64,000 bases of DNA from Lepidodermella squamata (Eukaryota; Animalia; Gastrotricha): NCBI GenBank assembly GCA_047495785.1, contig JBLDXI010000001.1, positions 2,418,001 to 2,482,000 of the forward strand, read 5' to 3'. Shown in pieces: positions 4,431 to 37,635 of this stretch; position 1 is the first letter of the stretch; every line of letters starts with the position of its first letter. The position numbers and the translations under genes are program-made. The notes beneath the pieces are model-generated. The model was not told the origin of the DNA and made no database searches. It saw only the letters and a list, made by a program, of their open reading frames with translations.

Positions 4431-7400
4431 TCAATAAGCAGCCGCCACCAGCAAGTATAGATTTATAGTTAGGAGGCATATCAGGCTGAAGAAGAAAACA
4501 ATTAGGTCAATCGCCCGAACGAGAGAAACAGGTGGCGAATTCTTCAGTAGAACGATAACAACGTTGCCCCTGACTAAAAACGGCTGGGCCAGGGCGGAGA
4601 CAACAATTTCGTAAGCTGTAATCATAGCTATCAGAGCAGATAGGAGGATGATGTAATTCGCATATAGGATTTGCTGCGAAGTTTCAGGAACGCTTTGCAA
4701 AACAGCTGCCTGAGCAACAATTAGCGATAACATCATCGTTCCACAAAATGCAGGTCTATCAGGCTCGAATGGAGCCATCATCAGGGAGCAAAACGCCAGA
4801 ACGATTATGATGTAACATGGGATCAATAGATTGACAAGGTAATAAGCGGGATTTCTTTGTAATGTGAAACGAATTCTACCATAGCTCATCGATGACAACC
4901 TTCGACTTGGTGAAGTTGTAGTGCCGAACTCCGTGCGAACATTGACCAGGTACCATATTTCGTTCGACAGTCCCCCTGTCGTTCTAGCGTAAATGCCACC
5001 AAAAGTCAGAAAATCAGCTGATTCATCGATGAGGAAAGTGTACTCGCAGGTCTGATGGTCAAATGGAAACTTCGCAAGGTCAAGCTTGCATTTCGATGTG
5101 AACGATCCGATTCGGTTCCAATGGAAAAACAGCGTGCGGTTGGGGCTTGTTGGGTAGTAAACAATCTCCATTTTCTCGCCATAGACCGGATTCGCCAGGT
5201 AGAAATCGGTCGACGTGTTGGCGAAAATTAGAGACGGGCGCCAGATGTCTTGTCGTTTCGCTGTAACAATTCGTTCTTTTTGGTCAACCGCAGGCGCTGC
5301 TACGTCATCCGAACACTCATCAACCATCCATTGCAGAAGGATCGAACTCCAAATTGTTATTTCTTGCGTCGATGGGCTGATGGATTGCAGGCCTTCTGCT
5401 GCGAAAGTCATATAGATTTTCGTGTTGGTGTCAGACGGCGATCTCATGTCGACACTAAGATACGTACAAGGCGCAAGGTCTTCGTACTTCAGAACCGGCC
5501 TTCGGTTCCCATCTATCAAAGGCGGTATGGGGAAGCCTGTCTCAGGATCTGAACCTCCTACAGTAGATGGCGAACTCGTCGATGAATTTGCGATGGTTTT
5601 AGCTATTGAAGTCATAGCCGTTGTCTTAGCTGTAGATTGAGTCGGTGGTGCGACGCCGGGGGTCAGTTGGAACAGATAACTAATAGCGCAAATTTCATTA
5701 AGGAGGACACTTTATAGAGATAATTGACACTCACAATTTCTCAGCAATGATACTTGCGTTGAACCCTAACATCCCATGCAAGTGCCAGATTCCGATGGGG
5801 TCTATGACATCGCTTATACCTGTTGCATCCACGTTGGAAACGCAAACTGCATTTTGGGAGGTCAGACTCAGCGGTAACGTAGCAATCGCCACCTAAATTT
5901 AAGAATGACTGATTCAATTTTGATATCATGCGATGAATGTTACAGTGATAATATCTTCAACGCATTGAACAATCAGTCGGTAGTAAGTTGTGCCAGTCAA
6001 AGGAAGTAAATCTGGAATGCCGCAAGATGGCTGCGACGTGCCAGTATAATTCAGTGGAATCGGCGTCGAATTATAGACAGTTGCGTAGGCTGGAGTGACG
6101 TAAACCTCGCCATAGCCGTAGCCGAGACGCTGCCAAACATGCAAACCATCATAGTTTGTCAACGAATCGAAATTGAGTGCGCCATTAGATTTAGCTAATT
6201 CGTTATTGATAAACAACACTCTTTTCCTTTCACAGAATCAAGTACCTTTTGTCCACGAATACTTGCTGCCAACGCTCAGTCCGAACCATGCATATGAACC
6301 ATCTGTTTTGTAAGTCACTCGCAAATCAACCTCAGCGCGCCATAGCGTATTCAGGATTCCCGGGCCGCCATACTAATTAAAATGTGGCGTTTTACACCTG
6401 AGAATCTTTGGATGCAAAAAATTACATTACTGTCCATTTGCCCATACGCAGTTGAACCCATTTTAGTCAGTTGGTACCCCTGGCTGGTACTTGTGGCCCC
6501 TGTCAAGCTCAGATCCATCGATCCAGTCACACTTGTGTTCACACGATCAAACGAAATAAAACTTCTGTACTTGGGCGTGCCTGAATAGTAAGTAGGCAGA
6601 GGCAGCGATACGGTGTCTGGAACCGGCGATATCGTTTCATTTAAAATCCAGAAGTAGCTATAATTTGTTCAAAAATGAAAAATTACTGATAATGGGTTAA
6701 ACAATCAATCTTACAATTTCTTCAATAGGATATCAGCATTTGACCCATTTGCCCCTATGAAGAAGGGTGAGTCATTGCCTTGTAGGCGTTGATAAGTCTC
6801 GGTCCATGCATTATAGTTTGTAACACACGTCGCTGGTGTGGTTTGTCCGTAGCCAGGGAGCGGGACGACTACAACCTAGAAACAATCCCTAGAATTGAGA
6901 AGGCTCTTTGAGAACAATGATTTTCATACTGTTATCCGTTCGTTAAGAGATTGAACGATCATTTTGTATTCAACTTTTCCTGAACTGTTGAACATGTCCG
7001 GACTGCCGCAGCCTGGCGTCGATATGTCGTTGAATGCAGGGGGTAATTGGGTGTGGAGGGCTCCGTTCTGATGCTTTATGTACAGGGTACCGCCAACTCC
7101 TACCTGTTGCCAGATGACCAAGCTGCCCAGCCATAGAACATAATCGTAAGGCTCAGTGTTTGCCGTTAGATTTGAAAAGTAACCTGGTGTAACATTCGCA
7201 AATTGTTGGTTAAAGCCTACAATGAAATTTTACCAGGTCTAGCATTCCAGCCGTTGATAGAAAAGCCAAACCAGGCACTACTGCCGTCCGTCTTGTAGTT
7301 AACACTCAATTCCATTTCGACTCGGTAATTTCCAGGTACGCGACCTTTAGCAAGATCTCTGCTCTTGAAAAATTAGACAGAAGGGACATTGTATCAACAA

Positions 7401-7710
7401 TTCATTTTTTATCAATTTTTTTTACCACAGCCAATCTGCCGAAAGTTGAGTTGGGCGTGTTAGGATTTGACATCGAAGTGAGTTGGATACCTCCCGATAC
7501 CGACTTTGCGGCATAAGAAGTCGAAGTCGGCGCTGTTGCGTCAATGTTCGCATTCTCCTTGTCAAACGATAGGTCATCAGCGTAAATGGGCGGTGAAGAA
7601 TACGCTGCAGGTAGGGGTAGGGAGAAGGTATCAGGAACGGGTGATACTGCTTCAGCCAACGGTACCAATTGAACCAACAGGCTGACGAAAATTCGCGTAA
7701 AATCTGTCAT
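4431..7710 (-). CDS. Cys-loop ligand-gated ion channel subunit with two tandem N-terminal extracellular domains and a Ser/Thr-rich linker (9 exons)
   Basis: Signal peptide at 7710. Eight short GT-AG introns join the upstream ORF fragments in frame to ORF 4431-5615, which has IWRP, Cys-loop CKLDLAKFPFDHQTC, R-x-P-x-YY-x-x-N-x-x-x-P before M1, and four TM helices. Confidence 0.85.
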
Positions 7711-8218
7711 TTTTGTCTCATTGAAAATGTTCGTAATGACGGATTGTCGCAGAATAACAGAAGCTCAGACATTGGCTCGTCCAAGAGCGCACTTTGGTTC
7801 ACTTCATAGATTGTTTAGCCATTAGTATCCAAGGAATATGAGCCTCGACTGCGCTGCTCAGACCTTATTGCGCCAACAGTAAGTAGTATACGGATAAAAA
7901 TAGTTGAATATTTACCAGGAATTTTCATAACATTAGCATTCTCCATGTCATTCTTTTCGGGAGCATATACTCGGGAGCGCATCATAGTCCACACGAGACT
8001 TTCCTCCTATTTTTCCTCCATATTCCATTTTCTCTCCCTATTGTAGTATCTAGTCCAGCGTTTGTTTACCCTTTTACCCTGCTTTTTTATGTGTCTGTCT
8101 GTATGTGATATAAAAAATCGATTATGAGTGCCCCTTCACTTAGTGTGAATATGCAAAAAAGATGCGTGTCTAGTAATTAGTCTAGTCATAAACACTGCCA
8201 TTTTTGTGATCGAGTCAC

Positions 8219-8390
8219 ATTCGGGCACCACTTTAACCGGTTGTGCCCCACCGGCTCCGTACAGCCTTCACCGGTAGTACCTGCCACAGCGATGAAATTC
8301 GCCCTAAAAAGCGAAGAAACTGAATAAGTCTCCGGTTTCATCCGGAGGTCCGGGGGTTCTCACGAACCTCACAGCGGCTTAGTCCGCAAA
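8219..8390 (+). ncRNA. Candidate structured non-coding element, copy A (family unassigned)
   Basis: Shares ATTCGGGCAC..GTGCCCCA and GGTCCGGRGGTTCTCACGARCCTCACAGCGGC with 16133-16252. Stems are kept despite sequence change. Confidence 0.5.
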
Positions 8391-8615
8391 TGATTAAAAA
8401 ACAAATTTGTTAAAGGTGTGCCAAGTGGTATCGACGATGGACAGCAGATAGCCGTTGCGTTTTTGGACCCTTCCTGCATATTCAAAATATTCCGAGTCAA
8501 AACAAAACAAAGTTTATTGGCTGAAAACTTGAGCAAAAGTTGATGGAAAGCAGAACTTATAACTTATAACAAAAGAAATCTAAATAGTTTACTATATAAA
8601 CCGTTAGATATTTGT

Positions 8616-11585
8616 TCACCAAAACGAGCATTTCTCAGCCGGGTTCATCTTAGCGCCAGCCGGGCACTTGAACGCTTCTGAAAATTTATCGAAATTCGAC
8701 AGTGTCCCAGTTACACGAATCGGCCCTGGCGTGTGCTCATCCTTCAGAACAGCCAATCGAAGCGACTCGGGTAAATAACTAGTACACCACATTTGACCAA
8801 ATGCCACGAAAAACAGCTGGTCATTCGTCAGCTTCAACGCATCGGTTGATTGCTCACAAATTTCGTGATCTTCCTCGCCAATTTCTTCGCCCATACCTTT
8901 GCGGTAGGCATCGAATGCAACGCGAATAGCTGCGTTATCAGCGATATTTTCGCCGACGGTTTGGGCGCCGCGAATGTGCTCGCCGTTAGCCTCGTAAGCG
9001 TCGAACTGCGAGACGATGCACGCGGCGCGCTCGTCGAAGCGTGACGACGTCTCGTTGTCCCACCACAGGCGCAAATGACCCAGTTCGTCGTACTGCTTGC
9101 CTTTGTCATCGATCGAATGTGCCAATTCATGACTTGAAAATAAAAATTATCACAACAAAATTGTATTTTTCAATGTTTTTTAAAATTAAAAAAATCAGCT
9201 TTTCTTCACACAATAATTCTGAAATTTGAAAGATAGGCGGGCCAGGTGATTACTGATTATTCGGTAATTTTTCGGAAATTTTCTGTTTTCCCTGATTTTT
9301 TTGAATATTTTTTTCGACTCAGTGTTCGAAATGAGGTGACCTACTTACCTTATAATAGCACCGATCGCTCCATAATTAATTGACCCTGGCAGATGGTCGC
9401 CCTTGAAGTAGAAGGGCGGGTCGAGAAGCCCGGCTGGCAGAGCAAATTTATTCTGATGAGTCGCGTAATACGCATTGGCAGTCGTTGGCGTCATGTACCA
9501 TTCGTATTTCACGTCCTCAACACGTCGCAATTTCTATAAAAATAAAAATTTTACGCAATTTTTCTAAACTTTTCTGAAATTTCCTACCATTAGTTCTCTT
9601 TTAAAGGAATAATTAAACGCGTGGAATTGATTAAAAGCGTAGTCTTCAGTGACTGTCAGATTTTCGTAACGGTTGTTCAAGTAGGTCGAGTTGAGAATCC
9701 AATCTGGGAAGCCGACGTCGTAAACTAGGGCGTCGAGCTTCTTCAACGCAAACTCCCGCGTGCTGTCCATCATCCAAGTCGCATTTTCCAACCGCCGCCG
9801 GAAAGATGACACGATTTCTTTCGTCAGGTCCAGAACTCGATGCTTGTCGTCGACGGAGAAATATTCGTCGAGAAACAGCGCGCCGAGAGGGAAACCGATT
9901 GTTGAGTCGGTGTCGGTAACGCAGTGGTGCCAGATTTCCGGCTCGCCTTGAGAGCCTTCGAATATTTGCGCGAATTTTGCGTACAGGCTGCGGAAAGACT
10001 CGCCGAAGTACTTGGCGTAGTCGTCAACGGCTCGGTAGACGAAATAATTGTGCAGAGTTCTACGACCCGACCAAGTTTCCAACATTTCGCTAAGAATAAA
10101 TTTCAAAATTTTACATTTTTGCTTCATTTTCAAAATTAATTAATTAACTAATAAATTTTTAATTGTTTATTAATTTAATTAATTCTTTTTTTTTAGTTTT
10201 CGAATTGAAAATTGCTTAATTCATATTTTAACCGCCCGAAAAAATGGAAAATAATTACCTTATCAGCGGGCCCAGGCTCAAGAAGTAGGGTGAGCAATGA
10301 AACGCAATGACCTCATCGTCGTTGATTTCAACGCCAAGACCATCAAAGGCCGTTCGAAACAGCCTAGTCCAGTTGACGAACGACGACTTTTCATTCATAG
10401 CCGCAATTGTCGCAGTCGAGTAGATTTTCGTGTGGTTTCGAATTTCATGCTTCGGTGACTGTAGAGCGGCTAGGCGTTGCTCGAACTCAACAACCTCGCG
10501 AACGTAGTCAACAATTTGCGGAGTGTAAACGATGAAAAGTTGGTCATCATCGTCATCATTTTCAACGCTTTTATCGACTTCGTTCGATTTTTCGTTCGAA
10601 TTGTCGTTCTCGGCCGATTTTTCGTTGACAGCACGTCGTTTGCGCGCTATGACCTCGTTTTGGACAATTTTAGTGTATTCGACCAGGAGATCGACGTAAG
10701 CTGTCAAAATAGTGTCGTTTGCTATGGTTTTGTTGATGTAATAGTCGCGGGTATCGCTGCCGAGGCCGAGGCCACCTTGGAAGATTTGGATCGAGTACAT
10801 GGAAGAATTAACCGTATCAGTGGTCACGCCCCAATAGAACAGGCCGTTAGGCGTGAACGATGACAAAGCAAGCAGTTCCGACGTCAAATCGAATGTTTCG
10901 TTCTGCGAGGTCATAAAATATTTCAAAAATTTTAAAATTTTAAACAAATATTTCCAAATTCAAAATAGTTAAAAAAAATTAAATTTCAAATCGAAAATTT
11001 TAATTTTTGAAATTTTAATAATTTATACCTTTAATTTTTAATTTTATCTAATTTTAATTAATTTTTTAATTTAATTGTTGATTAAATTTGAGGTAATTTA
11101 TTTGTTTTTTTGAATACCTCAGGTGGACTTTCGTAAAACCAAAATCCTCCAAGTTGATTGACCATATGCTGCATAGCAAGGACGCCGTTCCGGTTCGTTG
11201 CATTCACGTCCATGCATGACTGGAAATATCGATGCGCTTTCGCCCTCGCGCTGTTTCTGTCGCCATCAACCATCAGCGGTTTTTCAAGAACAAGCCGCGA
11301 CTTTCGCGACAGGGCCATGTCGTTTTTCGTAAACTGCGAAATTTTGTTGTCGCCGGGGGTGATTTTGTTGTTGGCTGCAAACCGCCCGCAGACGAATTCG
11401 TAGAAATCATCGCATGGATCGATCGATGTGTTCATCAGTTGGTAGATCGACGAAAATTTCGAACATTCCGACGTGGATTTTTGATCATTTATCGCAAATG
11501 ATTTCTCCCGGCCAGTCGGACTGGCAAGAACTACATTCGAGAGTAAAGATATCGCCGAAACTAATGTAACGGCGAATAGTTTCAT
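8616..11585 (-). CDS. M13 metallopeptidase (neprilysin/ECE family), probably secreted, 5 exons
   Basis: Signal peptide MKLFAVTLVSAISLLSNVVLA. Motifs DPCDDFYEFVCG, ANAYY, HELAH (starts just after the last intron), GENIAD, HTPGPIR and terminal MNPAEKCSFW. Confidence 0.93.
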
Positions 11586-12886
11586 TTTCGACACAATTTC
11601 AGCCTGGCAAAATAAGTAAAACCTGAGAGACTACGACGTGATAGCTTGAAGAACTTCGCTATGATATCTAAAGCTTGCAACAGATTGGATATTAGGACCA
11701 TAATGGTAAATATAGACACTTCAATCTGTGGCCCTATGCTGCTTATCAAACTTGAGCCACGTGGTTGGTCACAACAATTACGAGAAAACGCCTTGATTTA
11801 CCGGATTCCCTTGCTGCCAGGTGTAACGTTAAATAATTTATTCGAAAATGATAGTTTTCCAGATTCGAAGCAACTTTCCTCGTAAATAAAAATCCATTCG
11901 CCTGATGTTGTTAATTTAGCCGTAAAAAATTGTTAAATATGTAGTTGTATTTATGGCTTGGCGAATTATTAATTGATGCACAATAACAACTCACATTTTT
12001 AAGTGTTCTCATTTCGAAATAATTTCCAACCATTAATTTTAAAGCCCATTTTCTCTGCAACCATGATGGTAATCAACCTCTTTTGCATATATACCGTTCG
12101 ACATCTTGCTAATTGACCTTGAGAGTGGCATCAAAACCCCACGTTTCACCTGTTAATTAACCTGTTAACTGTTAATTGATTCTGTAACTTCATCTGTAAC
12201 TGTAATCTGTAATCTGTGAGGTTCCGAAAGATCGACGGCGCAATAGTAATTTTCTACCTCCGAAGCAATTTTCCTTGGAAATTAAAGAGGCGGCGAATAG
12301 ACTGCCCTTGACCAGAGCCTGATTTCGCCGTAAAAAATTGTCTTAAAAAGTGAAGACGAAGGTGAAATATTCTGTCGGGATTACTGCGATGATTCATCGA
12401 GCGTGTGTTGAAAATCCCTTGTTTTTATTATTATTTTAAAAGTTATCACATTTTTTCAAGCCATGAAATAATGAATAAAGGGGCAATAAAGGCGCAATTC
12501 TGATAATACAGCCGCTGTTACAGAAAAAACAACTGGCCAATTTCTCATTTTGGTTCACTATAGACGCAAATATGTTCGTGAGTTTTGCCTGCTACACCTG
12601 ACTTCACCGATAGGGTCCAATGGACCACCCATTGTGCCTTTTTAATTTTTTTTTCGAAAAACTGTTCAACTGAAGAATTCTATAAATTCATCCAGATGAA
12701 TCTATATATTCAAAATAACTAGCGGGATTGAAGTTTCAGTGAAATCAGATAGGAACAATTGAATCAGTCCCGGGCGCCGATTTCCCATCTCACCCTTCAT
12801 TTGCTTGAAAATTCGAAAATTCAAAGTTTTTGCTCCGCTGAAAAAAATCACGCCAAAGTGATGTTGCAAAATTACATAAAATTATT

Positions 12887-13762
12887 GAGTTAATCTAGTT
12901 TCGTCAGCTAATTTTTGCGTTTTGTCAGCTAATTCCTGTTTTTGTCAGAAGCATCGTTTTCTGACAGCAATGACTCTTTTTGACAGCAGAACTGCAATTT
13001 ACCAGCTAGTTTAATTTTAATTGAGTTTCTAACCATATATCGCTAGCCAAGATCATATAAATGCGAATTATAAATTTTTCTAATAATTTCAATATTCGGG
13101 TTGGAATGAATCCATTGCCAGTTTCAACGAATAGTACGCGCGCAAAATCAGTCAAAAATCTGTTGAACCCGCACTTTTGGCACTTTCGACGCGACATAAC
13201 AGCACAAATATGAATCTCTTGGGCAGCGAACTAGTCAGGGTTAGAGGGTTAGAAAAAGGCGCTATACAAGACTGGCAAGTTTTCATCCTGGGGGTTTCGA
13301 CAAGAGTTCGACACGACGATAGAAGCGTGGTAATTCCTTGTTATTCTGTAGAGTGATGGGTGTGGGGGTAGTAGAGAGGGAGTTCGAGTAGTTACAGGCA
13401 ATCAAGCCAAATTTTCCCTTCTTGCTAATATTTTCCTACTTTCTGAGCACTTAATGTTAAAAGATGAAGCTACGGTAATTACTACGGTAAGACTAAGGAA
13501 AAAATCGGCTGACTTGGCGGCCGGACATTGCCGAAGCAGGGCGATTACGGCAATGACCTCTAATTGGCATTTTTCGCGATATTACCCAGCAGTTCGCAGT
13601 AAACGTTTAACATTTTAGATAATTTTAATTTTATTTAAAATTAGCTGATAAATAGTAGTTCTGCTGTCAAAAAGAGTCATTGCTGTCAGAAAAAGATACT
13701 TCTGACAAAAACAGGAATTAGCTGACGGAACAAGGAATTAGCTGACAAAACAATATACACCC
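12887..13762. mobile_element. Non-autonomous DNA transposon with ~120-bp TIRs
   Basis: 12887-13010 is the imperfect reverse complement of 13640-13762 (GTCAGCTAATT sub-repeats). It is flanked by the direct repeat AAATTATT(G) at 12879 and 13763, an 8-9 bp TSD. Confidence 0.8.
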
Positions 13763-13900
13763 AAATTATTGCATCTCGATAAAGAAAGCTTTCATTGATA
13801 AAAAACGTTTTACGGCATTAAAAGCGAGTCAAGCTTTCTTGTTGACTACTACTGGTACTACTCAACATCTAGACAAAGTCATATTTGGCAGGATCGTCTT

Positions 13901-14641
13901 TCACTTTTTCTTGTTGAATGGCCAGTTGTTGCCCCATGGAAGTGGCGGCAAAGCATTCCAGTTCCAAGTAGGCTGCGGCACCCAAGGTAACGGCCACTGG
14001 GGCGGCGCCACCGTAGAAGGAGCTTCCCATCGAATCACCGGTAGCTTGATCGGTGGCGGGAGAAGAGGGCGAACCATCTCAGTATTGCCCCCAGTCGTAG
14101 GACCAACTCCATGGGAAACCGTCTCCAGATTGCTCGAGGAGATGCCCCATCGTCCCAGAAGTTGCTTGGCGTAGTTGGCTTGAGAGCTCGATAAAACACT
14201 GGTGCGTGAAAGCACCCAACCGTAACGCCATATAAACCCGTTTTGGACAAGTTCACTGTAACCTACAGCAACATTGTCGTAGTCGGTGTACAAAATGCGG
14301 AAGTCGTTGTCCTTATCGCCGAAATTGACCCATCGAATCGCCCACCAAGCTGGTTCGTCACTGGATTTCACCCTAGCCTGGCCGATACTTAGGGCCCATG
14401 TGTTTCTCGCCGCGAGCCATTGACGATCGTAGACCGTGACTGTTCCGTCGCCGTTGGCTACGTACGTTTTCGTGGCATCGGAGCCTGATTCCTGGGGGGT
14501 GGCCCTCGTTCGATAGATGACGTACCAGTTGCCAACAAATCGAGAGGCGTCGAAATCAGCCTGCAGGCCTGGCCGGCCGACTGACGTTTGGCCGTTAACT
14601 GAGGCTACGAAAAAAGCCGCCGCTAAAATTGCGACAAGCAT
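13901..14641 (-). CDS. Lipocalin (apolipoprotein D/Blc-like) with Pro/Trp-rich C-terminal tail
   Basis: Signal peptide MLVAILAAAFFVASVNG. Lipocalin motifs FDASRFVGNWY, ILYTDYDN and WVLSR. Single coding exon. Confidence 0.9.
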   Translation of the reverse strand: MLVAILAAAFFVASVNGQTSVGRPGLQADFDASRFVGNWYVIYRTRATPQESGSDATKTYVANGDGTVTVYDRQWLAARNTWALSIGQARVKSSDEPAWWAIRWVNFGDKDNDFRILYTDYDNVAVGYSELVQNGFIWRYGWVLSRTSVLSSSQANYAKQLLGRWGISSSNLETVSHGVGPTTGGNTEMVRPLLPPPIKLPVIRWEAPSTVAPPQWPLPWVPQPTWNWNALPPLPWGNNWPFNKKK

Positions 14642-15001
14642 GGCAGTTATTTTTTGTTTTTCAACTGTAAAAAAAATTGGTTGAAAAATTGAAGCTTGTC
14701 GATGTTTTAGTTGCTTAAATAGTCGCGTCGACAACAGCTTCCTTCCCATACCACGCATTTTTTAAGCTTTTTTTTGTAGATGAGCGCAACGTGACGAGAT
14801 TCACGTGTGAAAAAACTGCTGCTCTTGTCGACAATCGGCTTGTCGACGTGTTGCTTGTCGACAATAAGATTGTGGAAAGTTTTATATGATAACAGCCCTT
14901 GTACTTGAATAACATCCGGATTTGACGATTTTTGTTAAATTTAGGAAAAAATGAGTATAAAGAGAAATGATACGTGGAATTTTAATTTTAGAAAATTAAA
15001 T

Positions 15002-15487
15002 GACCGTTAACAACTGAGAAGTGGGGTTTGGCGAATTTTTTGTATTTTTCAGCAAATGGCAAAACGTGTGTTGACCTGAAGGGGACGATTCTTGCATTCC
15101 TAGATGATCTCACCCAGTTTTTCTTGAGTATTTTGATTTTTCAAAATTCAGACCTCGAGGAAGGTCCCATTCACCTCAAAAGACGAGAGACCCTAAGGTG
15201 TCGCCGAAAAGGCTTATCGATTTAGGTTGACGTAAAAGCACTAGCTTGATTCCAAACAAATTTTTGAATACCTCAGATTATCCCAAAACATCTCGGGTGC
15301 GCATGAGAAATTTTGATATCGTTCGACTTCTCGTTGATTGATCTTGAAGGCGACAATATTATAGCACCAGTATTATCAAATTCGATTGTAATACACTTTC
15401 TATAGGAAAATTCTATAGGCATTAACGGGTTAAAATATCACGATGTAAAAAATTTCGCCAAAGCATACTTCTCACTTGCTAACGGTA
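15002..15487. mobile_element. MITE family 1, copy 1 (GACCGTTAAC.. TIR, 4-bp TSD AAAT)
   Basis: ~38-bp imperfect TIRs with AAAT on both sides. The internal sequence is homologous to 20032-20579 and 39074-39621. Confidence 0.85.
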
Positions 15488-16132
15488 AAATGATAAAGAA
15501 ATGACAATTGGTTATTTTTATTTGGGTCTTTTAGACAAGCGTCGCGCAAATTAATTCGAAACAAAACATTAAGGTGTGCGCAAATTAAACAAAGCGCGAC
15601 ACTTGATCCGCATACTTGCGCGACATTTCGAATTAATTTGCGCGACGTTTTGGGTTTATCTCTTTTTATTTTTATTTTCAGCAGAACATCTACGGGAATG
15701 AAGAAACGCGCCTTATATCCTTTAGCCCTTTAGCGAGCTATTATTCCGGCCTTCGGGTCTGCTTATTTTTGCCTCTTGATTTTCATTCGCAGTACTTAAA
15801 AGGATGGTTGATTAGGAAGCTGAGCAAATCTAGGTGGTAATTTTTTATTAACTTTAGCATTAGGAGATTTAATCTCCTTTTCTCATGGAATTGGGAAGCA
15901 TTTCGAATTTTTCTGGCAATTGGATGTTAACTCGCCTCTCGTGCCAGACTTTTTGGTCTCTTTTCTGTTTTTTTATTTCGCAAAAAAATTAGCATCTCAT
16001 TTTTTATATTGACGTTGCACTTTTTTTGCAAGAAATCGCCGTCTCGTATGCATATTCTGATTAATTTTCTGGCTTGAGGTTTCTCATCTACGCAACCGGG
16101 CCAATTCGCCATTTCATCACAAATTCGGGCAC

Positions 16133-16252
16133 GGCTTTCGGGTCGTGCCCCAAATCAAATGAAAGCAATTGTGAAAATTGATCAGTCATGTGCGTCGGTG
16201 TTTCACCGGCGGTCCGGAGGTTCTCACGAGCCTCACAGCGGCGAAAGCCGTT
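16133..16252 (+). ncRNA. Candidate structured non-coding element, copy B
   Basis: Hairpins with TTCG and GAAA tetraloops and G-T wobbles on the + strand. Motifs shared with 8219-8390. Confidence 0.5.
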
Positions 16253-16329
16253 ATCATTCAATAAAAAAAACAAATTGCGAAATAAAACCTGGATGATTTA
16301 CTGAAATCGATTAATTTTTCGAAAAATAT

Positions 16330-16875
16330 TCAGTCGAACACTTCCCAAATCGCAAACCAATCGGAGAGACGAATCGCAATTTCACCGAAAATCATGCCAC
16401 TTGTTACCCCACAGATCAGCAGTACAATAGGCGCCGTAAAGATTTTTCTTGCCATCGCCAATCCGATTGAGGATCCTACCAAGCTGAATAGCACACAAGC
16501 CGTAGTGTCCACGACATGCCTTTTCGCGGTCGTCTTCAAAATTTCGCCATTTACGCACCGCCACGTTGTCCCGCAGATGTTAATGCCAAGTAGGGTAGAC
16601 ACGAAAATAACATTCGAATAATTTCCACTTCGTTCGAAGAGCTTTGAAACGCCCAACAGAACAACATGCAATAAAGCTTTATCCTCACGCGACTTTGCCT
16701 TCTCCGCAGCGTTCATTAGCAGTTGGCGGAAAATCTTTCCTTGGTCGCCATGAAGCTTCGATAAAGTGTATACGAGAGACGTATGGAGAGCTACAAAAGT
16801 CTGTTGCGGGTTAAATGGGACATAGCTGAAGTAGTTTTTCGAGGCAAGATTGCCGGACTCAACTGAGTCGACCAT
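16330..16875 (-). CDS. Unknown 181-aa protein with C-terminal Gly-rich hydrophobic helices
   Basis: Single ATG-initiated ORF preceded by a TTTCAG acceptor. The C-terminus has two hydrophobic small-residue helices (LVGSSIGLAMA, ICGVTSGMIFG). Confidence 0.6.
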   Translation of the reverse strand: MVDSVESGNLASKNYFSYVPFNPQQTFVALHTSLVYTLSKLHGDQGKIFRQLLMNAAEKAKSREDKALLHVVLLGVSKLFERSGNYSNVIFVSTLLGINICGTTWRCVNGEILKTTAKRHVVDTTACVLFSLVGSSIGLAMARKIFTAPIVLLICGVTSGMIFGEIAIRLSDWFAIWEVFD

Positions 16876-35755: not shown

Positions 35756-37635
35756 CTACGCGATCATTTTAAGTCCGTAAACCAAGAGTGTAACCAGTCC
35801 GCAAATAAACGAGGCAATCGCAACAACCAAATCCGCCAATCGAATGATGCGAATGGCACTATTTTTGTGGTCATTAAGCCAGACAAGTCGCTTGGCGGTG
35901 CGCATATGTGCAATCGAACACGTTGCGAGTGTGTAGATGGTAATTAACACGCAAATGACCATAAAAGCGACGACGATATTAATGAGATACACCTCGGTCG
36001 CTGTTTGAGGAATCAGGTCGAAAATCAAGGTCAACATGACTGCAATTGATAGGTTCACTGTAATGCAAAACGTCGGCCTATCCGGGTGTTTCGGGTCCAT
36101 GATCAACGCTGATATTTGAAGTAGAAATAACGAGATGGTCGGTATGAAAACATTTGAGACGTAATATTGGAATTTTCGCTTCAAAGTCAACGTCGCGGTG
36201 ATGTGGGGATACCCGCCAGCAATGCGCTTTGAAGCGTTGAAGCCGATTAGATCCCAAATTTCGTCCCCTCTCAGAATTTCGAACCCTTCCATAGCGGACA
36301 TGCTTAGGACGTTTATCTCAACTTCTTCGTTTTGATTCTCATTTTCGAACTCGAACGAGCAAGATGAAATGTCGAAGGGAAACTTGACGTAGCTGAAGCC
36401 GTAGCAGAGGGCTTGAAGTAGTCTGAAGCTGTAGATCAGAAATCTGACTCCCAATCGATGAAAGGGCTGCACTTTGATGAGCCGCTCACTATTATCCCGA
36501 AAATAAAAATAAAATAAAATGGTTAAATACTGTAACGTCTGTCAAAAGGACATCAGGGCAACCTTAGACACTTCAAATTATGTTACTTCATCATCTTCTG
36601 TTTGATCGATTTTTTAAAATCCAAAGATCATCAGAATATCTTTCAGCGGAACCACTTTTCAAAATTTGGCACCGAATGCAACATTTTCGAATATTTTTAT
36701 CAATTTATAATTATGCGGTGTTCTCAATAATTCTGAAAATTATGATGAGAATTTGTCCAGAATATCGCGAAGAATTTTTATGATTTTATGAAAAATTTGG
36801 ATTATTTACAATTAAATCAGGAAATCCCCGAGCAAAAAATATTGAAAATTCAATTCAAATTTGGTTACGCTAAAAGTAAAACAGTTCCAAAATTAGAGTC
36901 TTCGAATCTTGAAATTCAGGGGTCCGTTGAATATGCAAATGAGCTTCTAAAATCAAAGCCAAAAGTCAACCATTTTTCGGTAAAAAATGGAAAAATTTCC
37001 AAATTTTGCAGGAAATTCAGGAAAATTAGTTTTCCCAAGTTTGGGTTAATTTTTTGATTTTCAACTGATTTTTGAACTTTGAAAAAAATGGTTATGTTCA
37101 AAGTTACGGTAACAAAATAGTAAGCAAAAGACGAAATCTCACTCTCTAAGGGGTCGCGACTCAGCCATTGTGTTGATGAACTGCATGTCTGGCCACCAAA
37201 CATCCACTGCTGGAATTTCAAATTGAAGCCTATCCAGCTTTTCTTGCGAAAGGTTCTGGTAGCCAGGGTACAAAGCTGATCTTATATCTCCATCGCAAGG
37301 TATTACCCAAGAAATTCGCAAATTTACCATGGCGGTCACGCTATCATTTATTATGAAAATAAAATTGACTAAAATTCATGGTAATTTTACCTCATAGATT
37401 CGTCGCTAATGTCGTCGATTTGGCTGATTCCAACCTCGATGTAACTCTGTATGGGGTCGTTGAAATTGCCAGTTTTCAAGTGCCACTCTGTCGGCAAATT
37501 GTTCGCCAAGGCGATCGGGCATAAATTGAAGAATCTCTCCTTCATTTCACCAGTCAAAGTTGTCACGTCATGGCTGGAAATTTCCGGGAAGAATGAGCTC
37601 AGAAGCAGCTGAGATACTATGAGAAAAGCAGCCAT
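35756..37635 (-). CDS. Divergent Cys-loop ligand-gated ion channel subunit, paralogue of 26890-28200
   Basis: Same exon structure. Motifs NLPTEWHL, VWWPDMQF, CYGFSYVKFPFDISSC and MDPKHPDRPTFCITVNL. Confidence 0.88.

Follow-up and report, generated by a model that had tools for sequence, protein, structure and literature searches.

The DNA considered here is a window of 64,000 nucleotides, that is, the whole stretch that was analyzed, from the gastrotrich Lepidodermella squamata (GenBank assembly GCA_047495785.1, contig JBLDXI010000001.1, forward-strand positions 2,418,001 to 2,482,000); coordinates without a contig prefix are positions in this window. Within it lie two diverged stretches, copies A and B, read here on the + strand, that a first-pass annotation described as two copies of a structured non-coding element. 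Re-reading their parts in the sequence, we find that both stretches exist and share an order of modules (Table 1): a 5′ hairpin, a middle, two further hairpins with GGTCCGG between them, and a TCACAG (TCACAGCGGC) module followed by a terminal GCGG/CCGY hairpin, with AAAAAACAAATT downstream. The ATTC conserved immediately 5′ of GGGCAC is promoter-proximal DNA, and the RNA of copy A is predicted to start at the promoter box plus 74 nt. The middles between the 5′ hairpin and hairpin 2 cannot be aligned between A and B (81 nt vs 41 nt). The resemblance between the copies is beyond chance; with ≤3 mismatches allowed, a 32-nt core has exactly two occurrences in the 121-Mb genome, and its reversed control has none. 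Both copies had also been placed just past the 3′ end of a minus-strand gene; this location is incidental, and the two neighboring genes are unrelated.

Table 1. Parts of copies A and B in the window, with the comparisons that bear on each.
Feature	Position	Strand	Remarks
Copy A, promoter box (proximal sequence element-like, TGAATATGCAAAA)	8146-8158	+	ATATGC at −74 from the first G of the RNA; 1 mismatch to the 13-mer of U1 genes, with U1 spacing
Copy A, predicted RNA, 166 nt	8223-8388	+	5′ hairpin, 81-nt variable middle and 61-nt 3′ domain
Copy A, 5′ hairpin GGGCAC...GTGCCC	8223-8248	+	92.9% of cells paired across 8 paralogs
Copy A, hairpin 2, CTCCGG/CCGGAG	8330-8347	+	Both sides changed in 4/6 pairs (10-copy comparison)
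Copy A, hairpin 3, 7-bp stem, UCAC loop, GUCCGG just before	8353-8370	+	Both sides changed in 6/7 pairs, 18 genes
Copy A, terminal hairpin, GCGG/CCGC	8374-8387	+	Change of GCGG/CCGC to GCGA/UCGC; 94-97% of cells paired
Copy A, 3′ box (ATTAAAAAACAAATTTG), outside the RNA	8393-8409	+	Same A-rich ...ACAAA box after U1 and U2 genes
Copy B, promoter box (TGCATATTCTGAT)	16049-16061	+	ATATTC at −75; 4 mismatches, weakest in the family
Copy B, predicted RNA, 126 nt, four hairpins, UUCG and GAAA loops	16127-16252	+	Minimum free energy −54.3 kcal/mol, z = −4.70
Copy B, 5′ hairpin GGGCAC...GTGCCC	16127-16150	+	
Copy B, hairpin 2	16193-16211	+	
Copy B, hairpin 3 (GGTTC-TCAC-GARCC, extendable to 7 bp), GGTCCGG just before	16217-16234	+	
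Copy B, terminal hairpin with TCACAGCGGC	16237-16252	+	
Copy B, 3′ box (TAAAAAAAACAAATTGCGA), outside the RNA	16262-16280	+	Likeness to the box after U1/U2 genes

A BLAST-type DNA search of the genome (121.2 Mb in 151 contigs) with copy B recovers copy B alone, because its paralogs are too diverged for such a search. Covariance models recover many more. The first model (R1), of the 61-nt 3′ domain and built on A and B only, finds 10 loci; the second (R2), built on these ten, finds 13, the additions being weak matches; and the third (R3), of the last two hairpins only and built on 18 genes, gives 21 matches, all in the same few places, with every subfamily recovered. R1 gives the 3′ domain of copy A 86.4 bits, and R2 gives it 72.9 bits. 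Seven more copies are located on the contig of A and B (contig C1, 2.325-2.415 Mb), and the nine genes of this cluster occupy both strands within 110 kb. Off this contig, R1 matches one locus on C38 and one on C19; in a scan of the fetched DNA, the C19 locus is a cluster of seven related genes (~10.5 kb) and C32 contains at least three. The supposed pair of copies is therefore part of a larger set, nine diverged copies in the 110-kb region and ~21 related genes genome-wide in four clusters or groups (C1, C19, C32 and C38).

The predicted RNAs of the eight delimited cluster genes are 96 (gene m2414), 113, 125, 126, 126, 132, 158 and 166 nt long, and those of the measured C38, C19 and C32 genes are roughly 135-175 nt. 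The middle varies in both length and sequence across the family (9-81 nt); in m2414, the shortest RNA, only nine bases separate the 5′ hairpin from hairpin 2, so the middle is dispensable for the core architecture. The 3′ domain is constant, that is, hairpin 2, G-Y-C-M-G-G, hairpin 3, C-A-C-N and a GC-rich tetraloop hairpin. Its last two hairpins and their invariant linker are found also in the C19, C32 and C38 groups, whose 5′ parts differ; an 18-gene MAFFT alignment of this two-hairpin module is almost gap-free, with invariant G, G, A, C, C and G columns. With the shared 3′ module and the same promoter spacing, the C1 cluster and the C19, C32 and C38 genes belong to one superfamily.

Within this superfamily, the C19 genes are a distinct subfamily at a distinct locus, and the C1 cluster is the larger. 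The C19 genes resemble those of the C1 cluster in the promoter box and its spacing, in an RNA that starts with a 5′ hairpin, and in the 3′ module, GG-R-R[stem]CC-AC-N-[GCGGC-loop-GCCGC]-U. They differ in the sequence of the 5′ hairpin (CUGCGGAG...CUCCGCAG against GGGCAUGGCUUUCGGGCCGUGCCC), in their longer middles (RNAs up to ~265 nt) and in the loop of hairpin 3, which is ACCGGR and not UCAC/UAAC. Three weak extra matches to the 3′ module were also seen: at C1:2529533-2529576 (+), where hairpins 3 and 4 are good and the promoter box is not clear, at C1:2533595-2533637 (−) and at C19:2109470-2109510 (−).

The paralogs make it possible to ask how the hairpins have changed. In an alignment of ten sequences of the 3′ domain, 91.8% of the cells that should pair do so, vs 34-54% in slid controls, in which the 3′ partners are displaced by 1-3 columns; both sides are changed in nine pairs, vs 0-2 in these controls. 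Because this alignment had been fitted to the covariance model, we made a second count, with the two-hairpin module of 18 genes aligned by MAFFT alone: 88.9% of cells are paired (31-49% slid), there are 41 double-change cells (0-6 slid), and none of 500 shuffles reaches the observed covariation score. The slid controls are a fairer test than the shuffles; the covariation is drawn wholly from paralogs of one genome, and since these share ancestry the shuffle counts are not probabilities. Hairpin 3 illustrates the changes, with pairing kept in GGUUC/GAACC, AGUGC/GCGCU, GGCUU/GAGCU and GGAUG/CAUCC; in hairpin 4, GCGG/CCGC is replaced by GCGA/UCGC. The 5′ hairpin (8 paralogs) is mostly conserved, with wobble changes, one-sided changes and one compensatory pair. 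For hairpin 2, compensation had been read from copies A and B; from these two alone the example is not decisive, because in the ungapped alignment the stems are in registers one base apart, whereas with ten copies four of the six pairs are compensated.

The folds also have a strand. For copy B, z is −4.7 on the sense strand and −2.0 on the complement, and none of 200 shuffles folds as well; three other members give −3.0, −2.4 and −3.1 in sense and +0.9, −2.1 and −2.0 in antisense. The G-U wobbles and the UUCG and GAAA loops to which the first-pass annotation had drawn attention are real, and G-U pairs and UUCG, GAAA and GCAA loops are confined to the strand defined by the promoter. A four-hairpin fold has thus been kept by selection on the promoter-defined strand. 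The suggestion that A and B represent a new non-coding RNA family selected for its fold is borne out by the covariation across 10-18 paralogs and by the lack of an Rfam match for any member; two of the checks proposed with it, a search with the Rfam models (no match even at permissive E-values) and a covariance model of genome-wide copies (compensatory changes among the additional copies), have now been run.

The same alignments bear on whether the conserved block is protein-coding, that is, part of a short mRNA for a ~47-residue peptide containing RRSGGSHEPHSG, with AATAAA/ATTAAA as poly(A) signals. Copy B has an ATG-initiated open reading frame (ORF) of 47 codons (16169-16312, +); in its frame, both differences between A and B in the 32-nt block are synonymous, as are several in hairpin 2; and an in-frame ATGAAA and a downstream AATAAA or ATTAAA are found in both copies. 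However, copy A has an in-frame TAA ahead of the block, the other eight copies specify unrelated residues (e.g., SGSAHALHSG and SGGFNQPHCD) although their bases still pair, the 5′ hairpin is conserved across different frames, and several members lack AATAAA yet have ...ACAAA. Because the peptide is not kept in the other paralogs, we regard the ORF of copy B as a coincidence; a coding function is scarcely credible.

The genes could instead be relics, either once-functional small-RNA genes that are now silent or elements that act as DNA and form hairpins incidentally. The weak promoter box of copy B would fit such decay. The spacers of the paralogs are saturated with changes, however, whereas the stems and linkers persist, as do the spacing of the promoter and the 3′ box, and the changes in the stems are compensatory; keeping the stems while the spacers saturate requires continued selection on the RNA. 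In addition, copy A is free of heterozygosity in a highly heterozygous sample: the contig of a public DNA run has 0 heterozygous sites across 8143-8509, compared with ~3-4% in the neighboring peptidase exon and intergenic DNA, which hints in a small way at constraint. We therefore consider decayed or DNA-level elements very improbable. The same run, in which two haplotypes are seen over 7400-9400, also holds a 124-bp deletion allele at 7958-8083.

The flanks of the genes identify the kind of transcription unit. Every copy has a TGAATATGCAAAT-like box ~75-80 nt before the 5′ hairpin, and we compared it with the genome's own U1 and U2 small nuclear RNA (snRNA) genes, which were located with the Rfam models before their flanks were read. 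In the family, the ATATGC of the box is 73-75 nt 5′ of the first G of the hairpin (ATATTC in copy B); of six U1 genes with the same box, five have ATATGC at −74 and one has it at −73, and U1 gene L017 has the ATATTC variant of copy B at −74. In the U2 genes the box is less strict and is found mostly at −75 to −80. Of eight cluster genes, seven carry the 13-mer of the U1 genes with ≤3 mismatches; counted from the hairpin's first G, it begins at −76 to −78 (U1, −77/−76). The background rate for ≤3 mismatches at the U1 offset is 0.16%. In the cluster genes, the position 74 nt downstream of this proximal sequence element (PSE) coincides with the first G of GGGCA or is ≤1 nt from it; in the genes on C19 and C38 it marks the base of the 5′ stem. 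Near −35, most of the family, U1 and U2 genes have a GC-rich box (GAATGCGG-like).

On the downstream side, an A-rich box, ...ACAAA or ...AAAAACAA, comes soon after the mature 3′ ends of U1 and U2 (at a distance of 10-12 nt for U1 genes and farther off for U2), and the family has ...ACAAA or ATAAA in an A-rich context 6-17 nt past hairpin 4. Because the same box follows the U1/U2 genes, AAAAAACAAATT, which had been described as the end module of the element, is a 3′ box outside the RNA. No runs of ≥4 U are found in or at the end of the cluster RNAs. The genes of the family are, then, predicted PSE-dependent (snRNA-type) transcription units, with a PSE at a fixed distance and a 3′ box without an oligo-T terminator, and both promoter and 3′ box are the same in kind and spacing as those of U1/U2.

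The likeness to the U1 and U2 genes of this genome thus includes the TGAATATGCAAAT-like element at −74, the GC-rich box near −35 and the ...ACAAA 3′ box, and it extends to the size of the RNA and a terminal GC-rich tetraloop hairpin. In contrast, the U1/U2 covariance models do not match the family, whose RNAs have neither a sequence for recognizing splice sites or the branch site nor a conserved Sm site; also, U1 and U2 are present in 42-47 near-identical copies, whereas the paralogs of the new family are highly diverged. The genome contains no fewer than 42 U1 and 47 U2 genes; many are arrayed, and they are often beside transfer RNA (tRNA) genes (C3, C7, C10, C15, C29, C32 and C42; loci L014-L025). 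The U1 RNA begins AAACUUACCUG, and its Sm region is atypical (AAUAUUUCACUUGG).

Other promoter-like sequences were seen. Within the window, a second exact TGAATATGCAAA box is located at 36928-36940 (+), with TTTGCAGGAAATTCAGG... 74 nt downstream; this may mark another snRNA-type gene or be a chance occurrence. In four members of the C1 subfamily (m2413, m2414, m2411 and m2325b; L007, L012, L026 and L034), a GGTGATTCATC motif (AP-1-like, TGAnTCA) is found ~30 nt upstream of the promoter box and could be a distal enhancer element of this subfamily. About 90 nt beyond copy A, at 8475-8489 (−), a promoter-like box (TATTTTGAATATGCA) is oriented back into the copy; with copy A's own box it makes a 15-nt inverted match that has no counterpart at copy B.

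The same flanks could direct RNA polymerase III (Pol III), from a type-3 (U6-like) external promoter, rather than RNA polymerase II (Pol II). The proximal element is common to Pol II snRNA genes and type-3 Pol III genes, T4-T6 follows a few C19 members, and some cluster genes have AT-rich stretches near −25. In none of the nine cluster genes, however, is there a run of ≥4 T at or past the 3′ hairpin, where a U1/U2-type 3′ box is found instead; the spacing of the box is that of U1; and no consistent TATA box is present at −25 to −30. The absence of T-runs, the U1-type spacing and the 3′ box thus argue for Pol II, and transcription by Pol III is quite unlikely.

The individual external promoters also bear on a mobile origin, either as a SINE (short interspersed nuclear element) or retroelement domain, as suggested in the first-pass annotation, or as a retrozyme-type repeat or a self-cleaving ribozyme within such an element. 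Multiple diverged copies on both strands, compact stable hairpins and the inverted 15-nt match around copy A would be expected for a mobile element. However, there are only ~21 copies, in four tight clusters, each with its own snRNA-type external promoter; they have no internal A/B boxes, internal U-tract, poly(A) tails or target-site duplications, and their A-rich stretch is a fixed box as in U1/U2. The inverted match at copy A is formed by the second promoter-like box, which is missing at B, and the check for terminal inverted repeats was negative as a general feature. The models of known self-cleaving ribozymes (hammerhead, hepatitis delta virus-like, twister, pistol, hatchet and others) give no match at E≤10 for A and B or E≤1 for the other members, so the ribozyme suggestion finds no support. 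We regard a mobile element or ribozyme as highly improbable.

If the genes are of snRNA type, the RNA itself might be a divergent member of a known small RNA class (U7, SmY, spliced-leader (SL) RNA, 7SK, Y/stem-bulge RNA, or a C/D or H/ACA small nucleolar RNA with its own promoter) that Rfam misses in a poorly sampled phylum. A snRNA-type promoter and 3′ box are common to such genes, and the Sm region of this genome's U1 is atypical, so that motifs may be shifted. However, at the gathering score the Rfam models give no snRNA match anywhere in the window and no family match to A or B, and there is none at E≤10 for A and B or E≤1 for seven other members; in 118 kb of related loci, only U1, U2 and tRNA reach the gathering score, where expected. 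For the Sm-class snRNAs (U1, U2, U4, U5, U11, U12 and U4atac) there is no covariance-model match to A, B or the seven other members. Two sub-threshold matches are attributable to chance: SNORD24 (20 bits vs a cut-off of 41) lies mostly outside the RNA, and a trypanosomatid H/ACA model (25 bits vs a cut-off of 50) is ~920 nt from a member gene (L006).

Nor do the motifs of these classes appear at homologous positions. A search for the Sm-site pattern (A-U3-6-G-R) finds Sm-like strings in three of 11 members, at non-homologous positions; the pattern detects U2 but fails with the genome's U1, too. No C/D or H/ACA boxes and no paired GAUC motifs are conserved on reading of the copies and the 8-gene alignment. 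The RNAs have neither the constant 5′ exon of an SL RNA nor a GU at a fixed position after the 5′ hairpin, and m2414 is without a middle. This genome does have a spliced-leader-like gene beside 5S, with no sequence relationship to the family; on C2, it contains AAG|GUACGU and AACUUUGG, followed by a hairpin and a T-run, and a TGAATATGCCATT box is located upstream of it in the ribosomal DNA unit (L032:984-1250). As a separate candidate, a telomerase template was rejected on direct reading; a single CCCTAA is present, in copy A only.

Beyond the genes of this genome, the nearest analogies are SmY and the snRNA-like RNAs of C. elegans. SmY RNAs are 70-90 nt long, with two hairpins flanking a canonical Sm site, and nematode SmY genes, about a dozen, are clustered, diverged paralogs, mostly in one genomic cluster. 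The clustered, diverged paralogs described here recall them. The 'snRNA-like' RNAs (snlRNAs) of C. elegans likewise have snRNA-type promoters (PMC1474057). The new family resembles SmY and the snlRNAs, that is, as lineage-restricted small RNAs from clustered, diverged paralogs with snRNA-type external promoters; it differs from SmY in its four hairpins, its length (96-175 nt) and its lack of an Sm site and of an Rfam match, and no complementarity of its middles to the SL RNA was found, so the RNAs do not qualify as SmY. U7 is ~60 nt long, with a single 3′ hairpin, a guide for the histone downstream element and the Sm site AAUUUGUCUAG. The new genes are, like U7, of snRNA type, and in two members an AUUUGUC/AUUUGUU between hairpins 2 and 3 resembles AAUUUGUCUAG; however, the U-rich string is absent in most members (such strings occur in three only, in non-homologous places), and there is no Rfam match. 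Membership in a known class is therefore unlikely.

We think it probable, instead, that A and B are two independent members of a gene family that is lineage-specific and encodes small non-coding RNAs of snRNA type; these are most likely made by Pol II through the snRNA pathway and may be assembled in a small ribonucleoprotein (RNP). Pol II and the snRNA pathway are favored because the same promoter and 3′ box flank U1/U2. Each gene would be a self-contained unit of ~300 bp, with an external promoter, a transcribed region of 96-175 nt and the A-rich ...ACAAA 3′ box. Transcription by Pol II would begin at the GGGCA of the stable 5′ hairpin after SNAPc-type initiation, and 3′ box-dependent end formation just after hairpin 4 would give an RNA that is not polyadenylated. 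The two-hairpin 3′ module may be a common protein-docking or stabilizing platform for a family of small RNPs, with the role played by the Sm site and 3′ hairpin in classical snRNAs; a common platform is suggested because four subfamilies with unrelated 5′ parts share it. The 5′ hairpin and variable middle would then be the subfamily-specific working part. Which polymerase is used, where exactly the RNAs start and end, their assembly in an RNP and what they may do are inferred from the genes.

Several observations weigh against this assignment. The promoter box of copy B is weak (four mismatches). The RNAs have no conserved Sm site or other known protein-binding motif, so the RNP is proposed by analogy. 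The covariation comes entirely from paralogs with a common ancestry. The sole public run that holds copy A covers intergenic and intronic DNA alike, with two haplotypes, and is genomic DNA. The comparison of Pol II and Pol III would use U6, for which two patterns from the 5′ consensus of metazoan U6 found no exact match. Comparison of the central regions with the SL RNA, U1 and U2 gave no significant complementarity (z from −2.4 to +2.0). Finally, no homologs were found outside this genome in two metagenome pattern scans and searches with neighboring proteins: the first scan had no matches, the only match of the second was a GC-rich contig, apparently of bacterial origin, with a hairpin attributable to chance and without the 3′ module, and the proteins used as a route to relatives (the 181-residue and 285-residue ORFs and a 394-residue Cys-loop exon, the last at E≤1e-20 only) gave no usable matches. 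The first of these, at 16330-16875 (−), encodes a multi-pass membrane protein, and the second, at 13901-14758 (−), a lipocalin-like protein with a Pro/Trp-rich tail; neither has a match in a word-indexed protein search, and both may be orphans.

As a more specific and tentative extension, the family may represent a class of small nuclear RNAs without Sm sites, made by Pol II and restricted to gastrotrichs or their near relatives, in which the 3′ module (with its invariant GG...AC linker) docks a dedicated protein and the 5′ hairpins and middles provide individual paralogs with targets or partners of their own, perhaps in spliced-leader trans-splicing, where SmY RNAs act in nematodes.

Although the kind of gene is known, the family is new and absent from Rfam, and its missing Sm site sets it apart from the classical members of that kind. 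The promoter, the 3′ box and the further paralogs go beyond what the first-pass annotation saw; new in the present analysis are the larger cluster on C1, a promoter and 3′ box shown to match those of U1/U2, the shared 3′ module and the rejection of the peptide. The snRNA promoter of this genome (an ATATGC core at about −74) and the downstream ...ACAAA are now defined and can be used to find other genes of the class. If the RNAs do serve trans-splicing or another nuclear process, they would be the second case, after nematode SmY, of snRNA-like cofactors made by a lineage for itself. Gastrotrichs are nearly unexplored molecularly, and the family is a ready target for finding a new small RNP.

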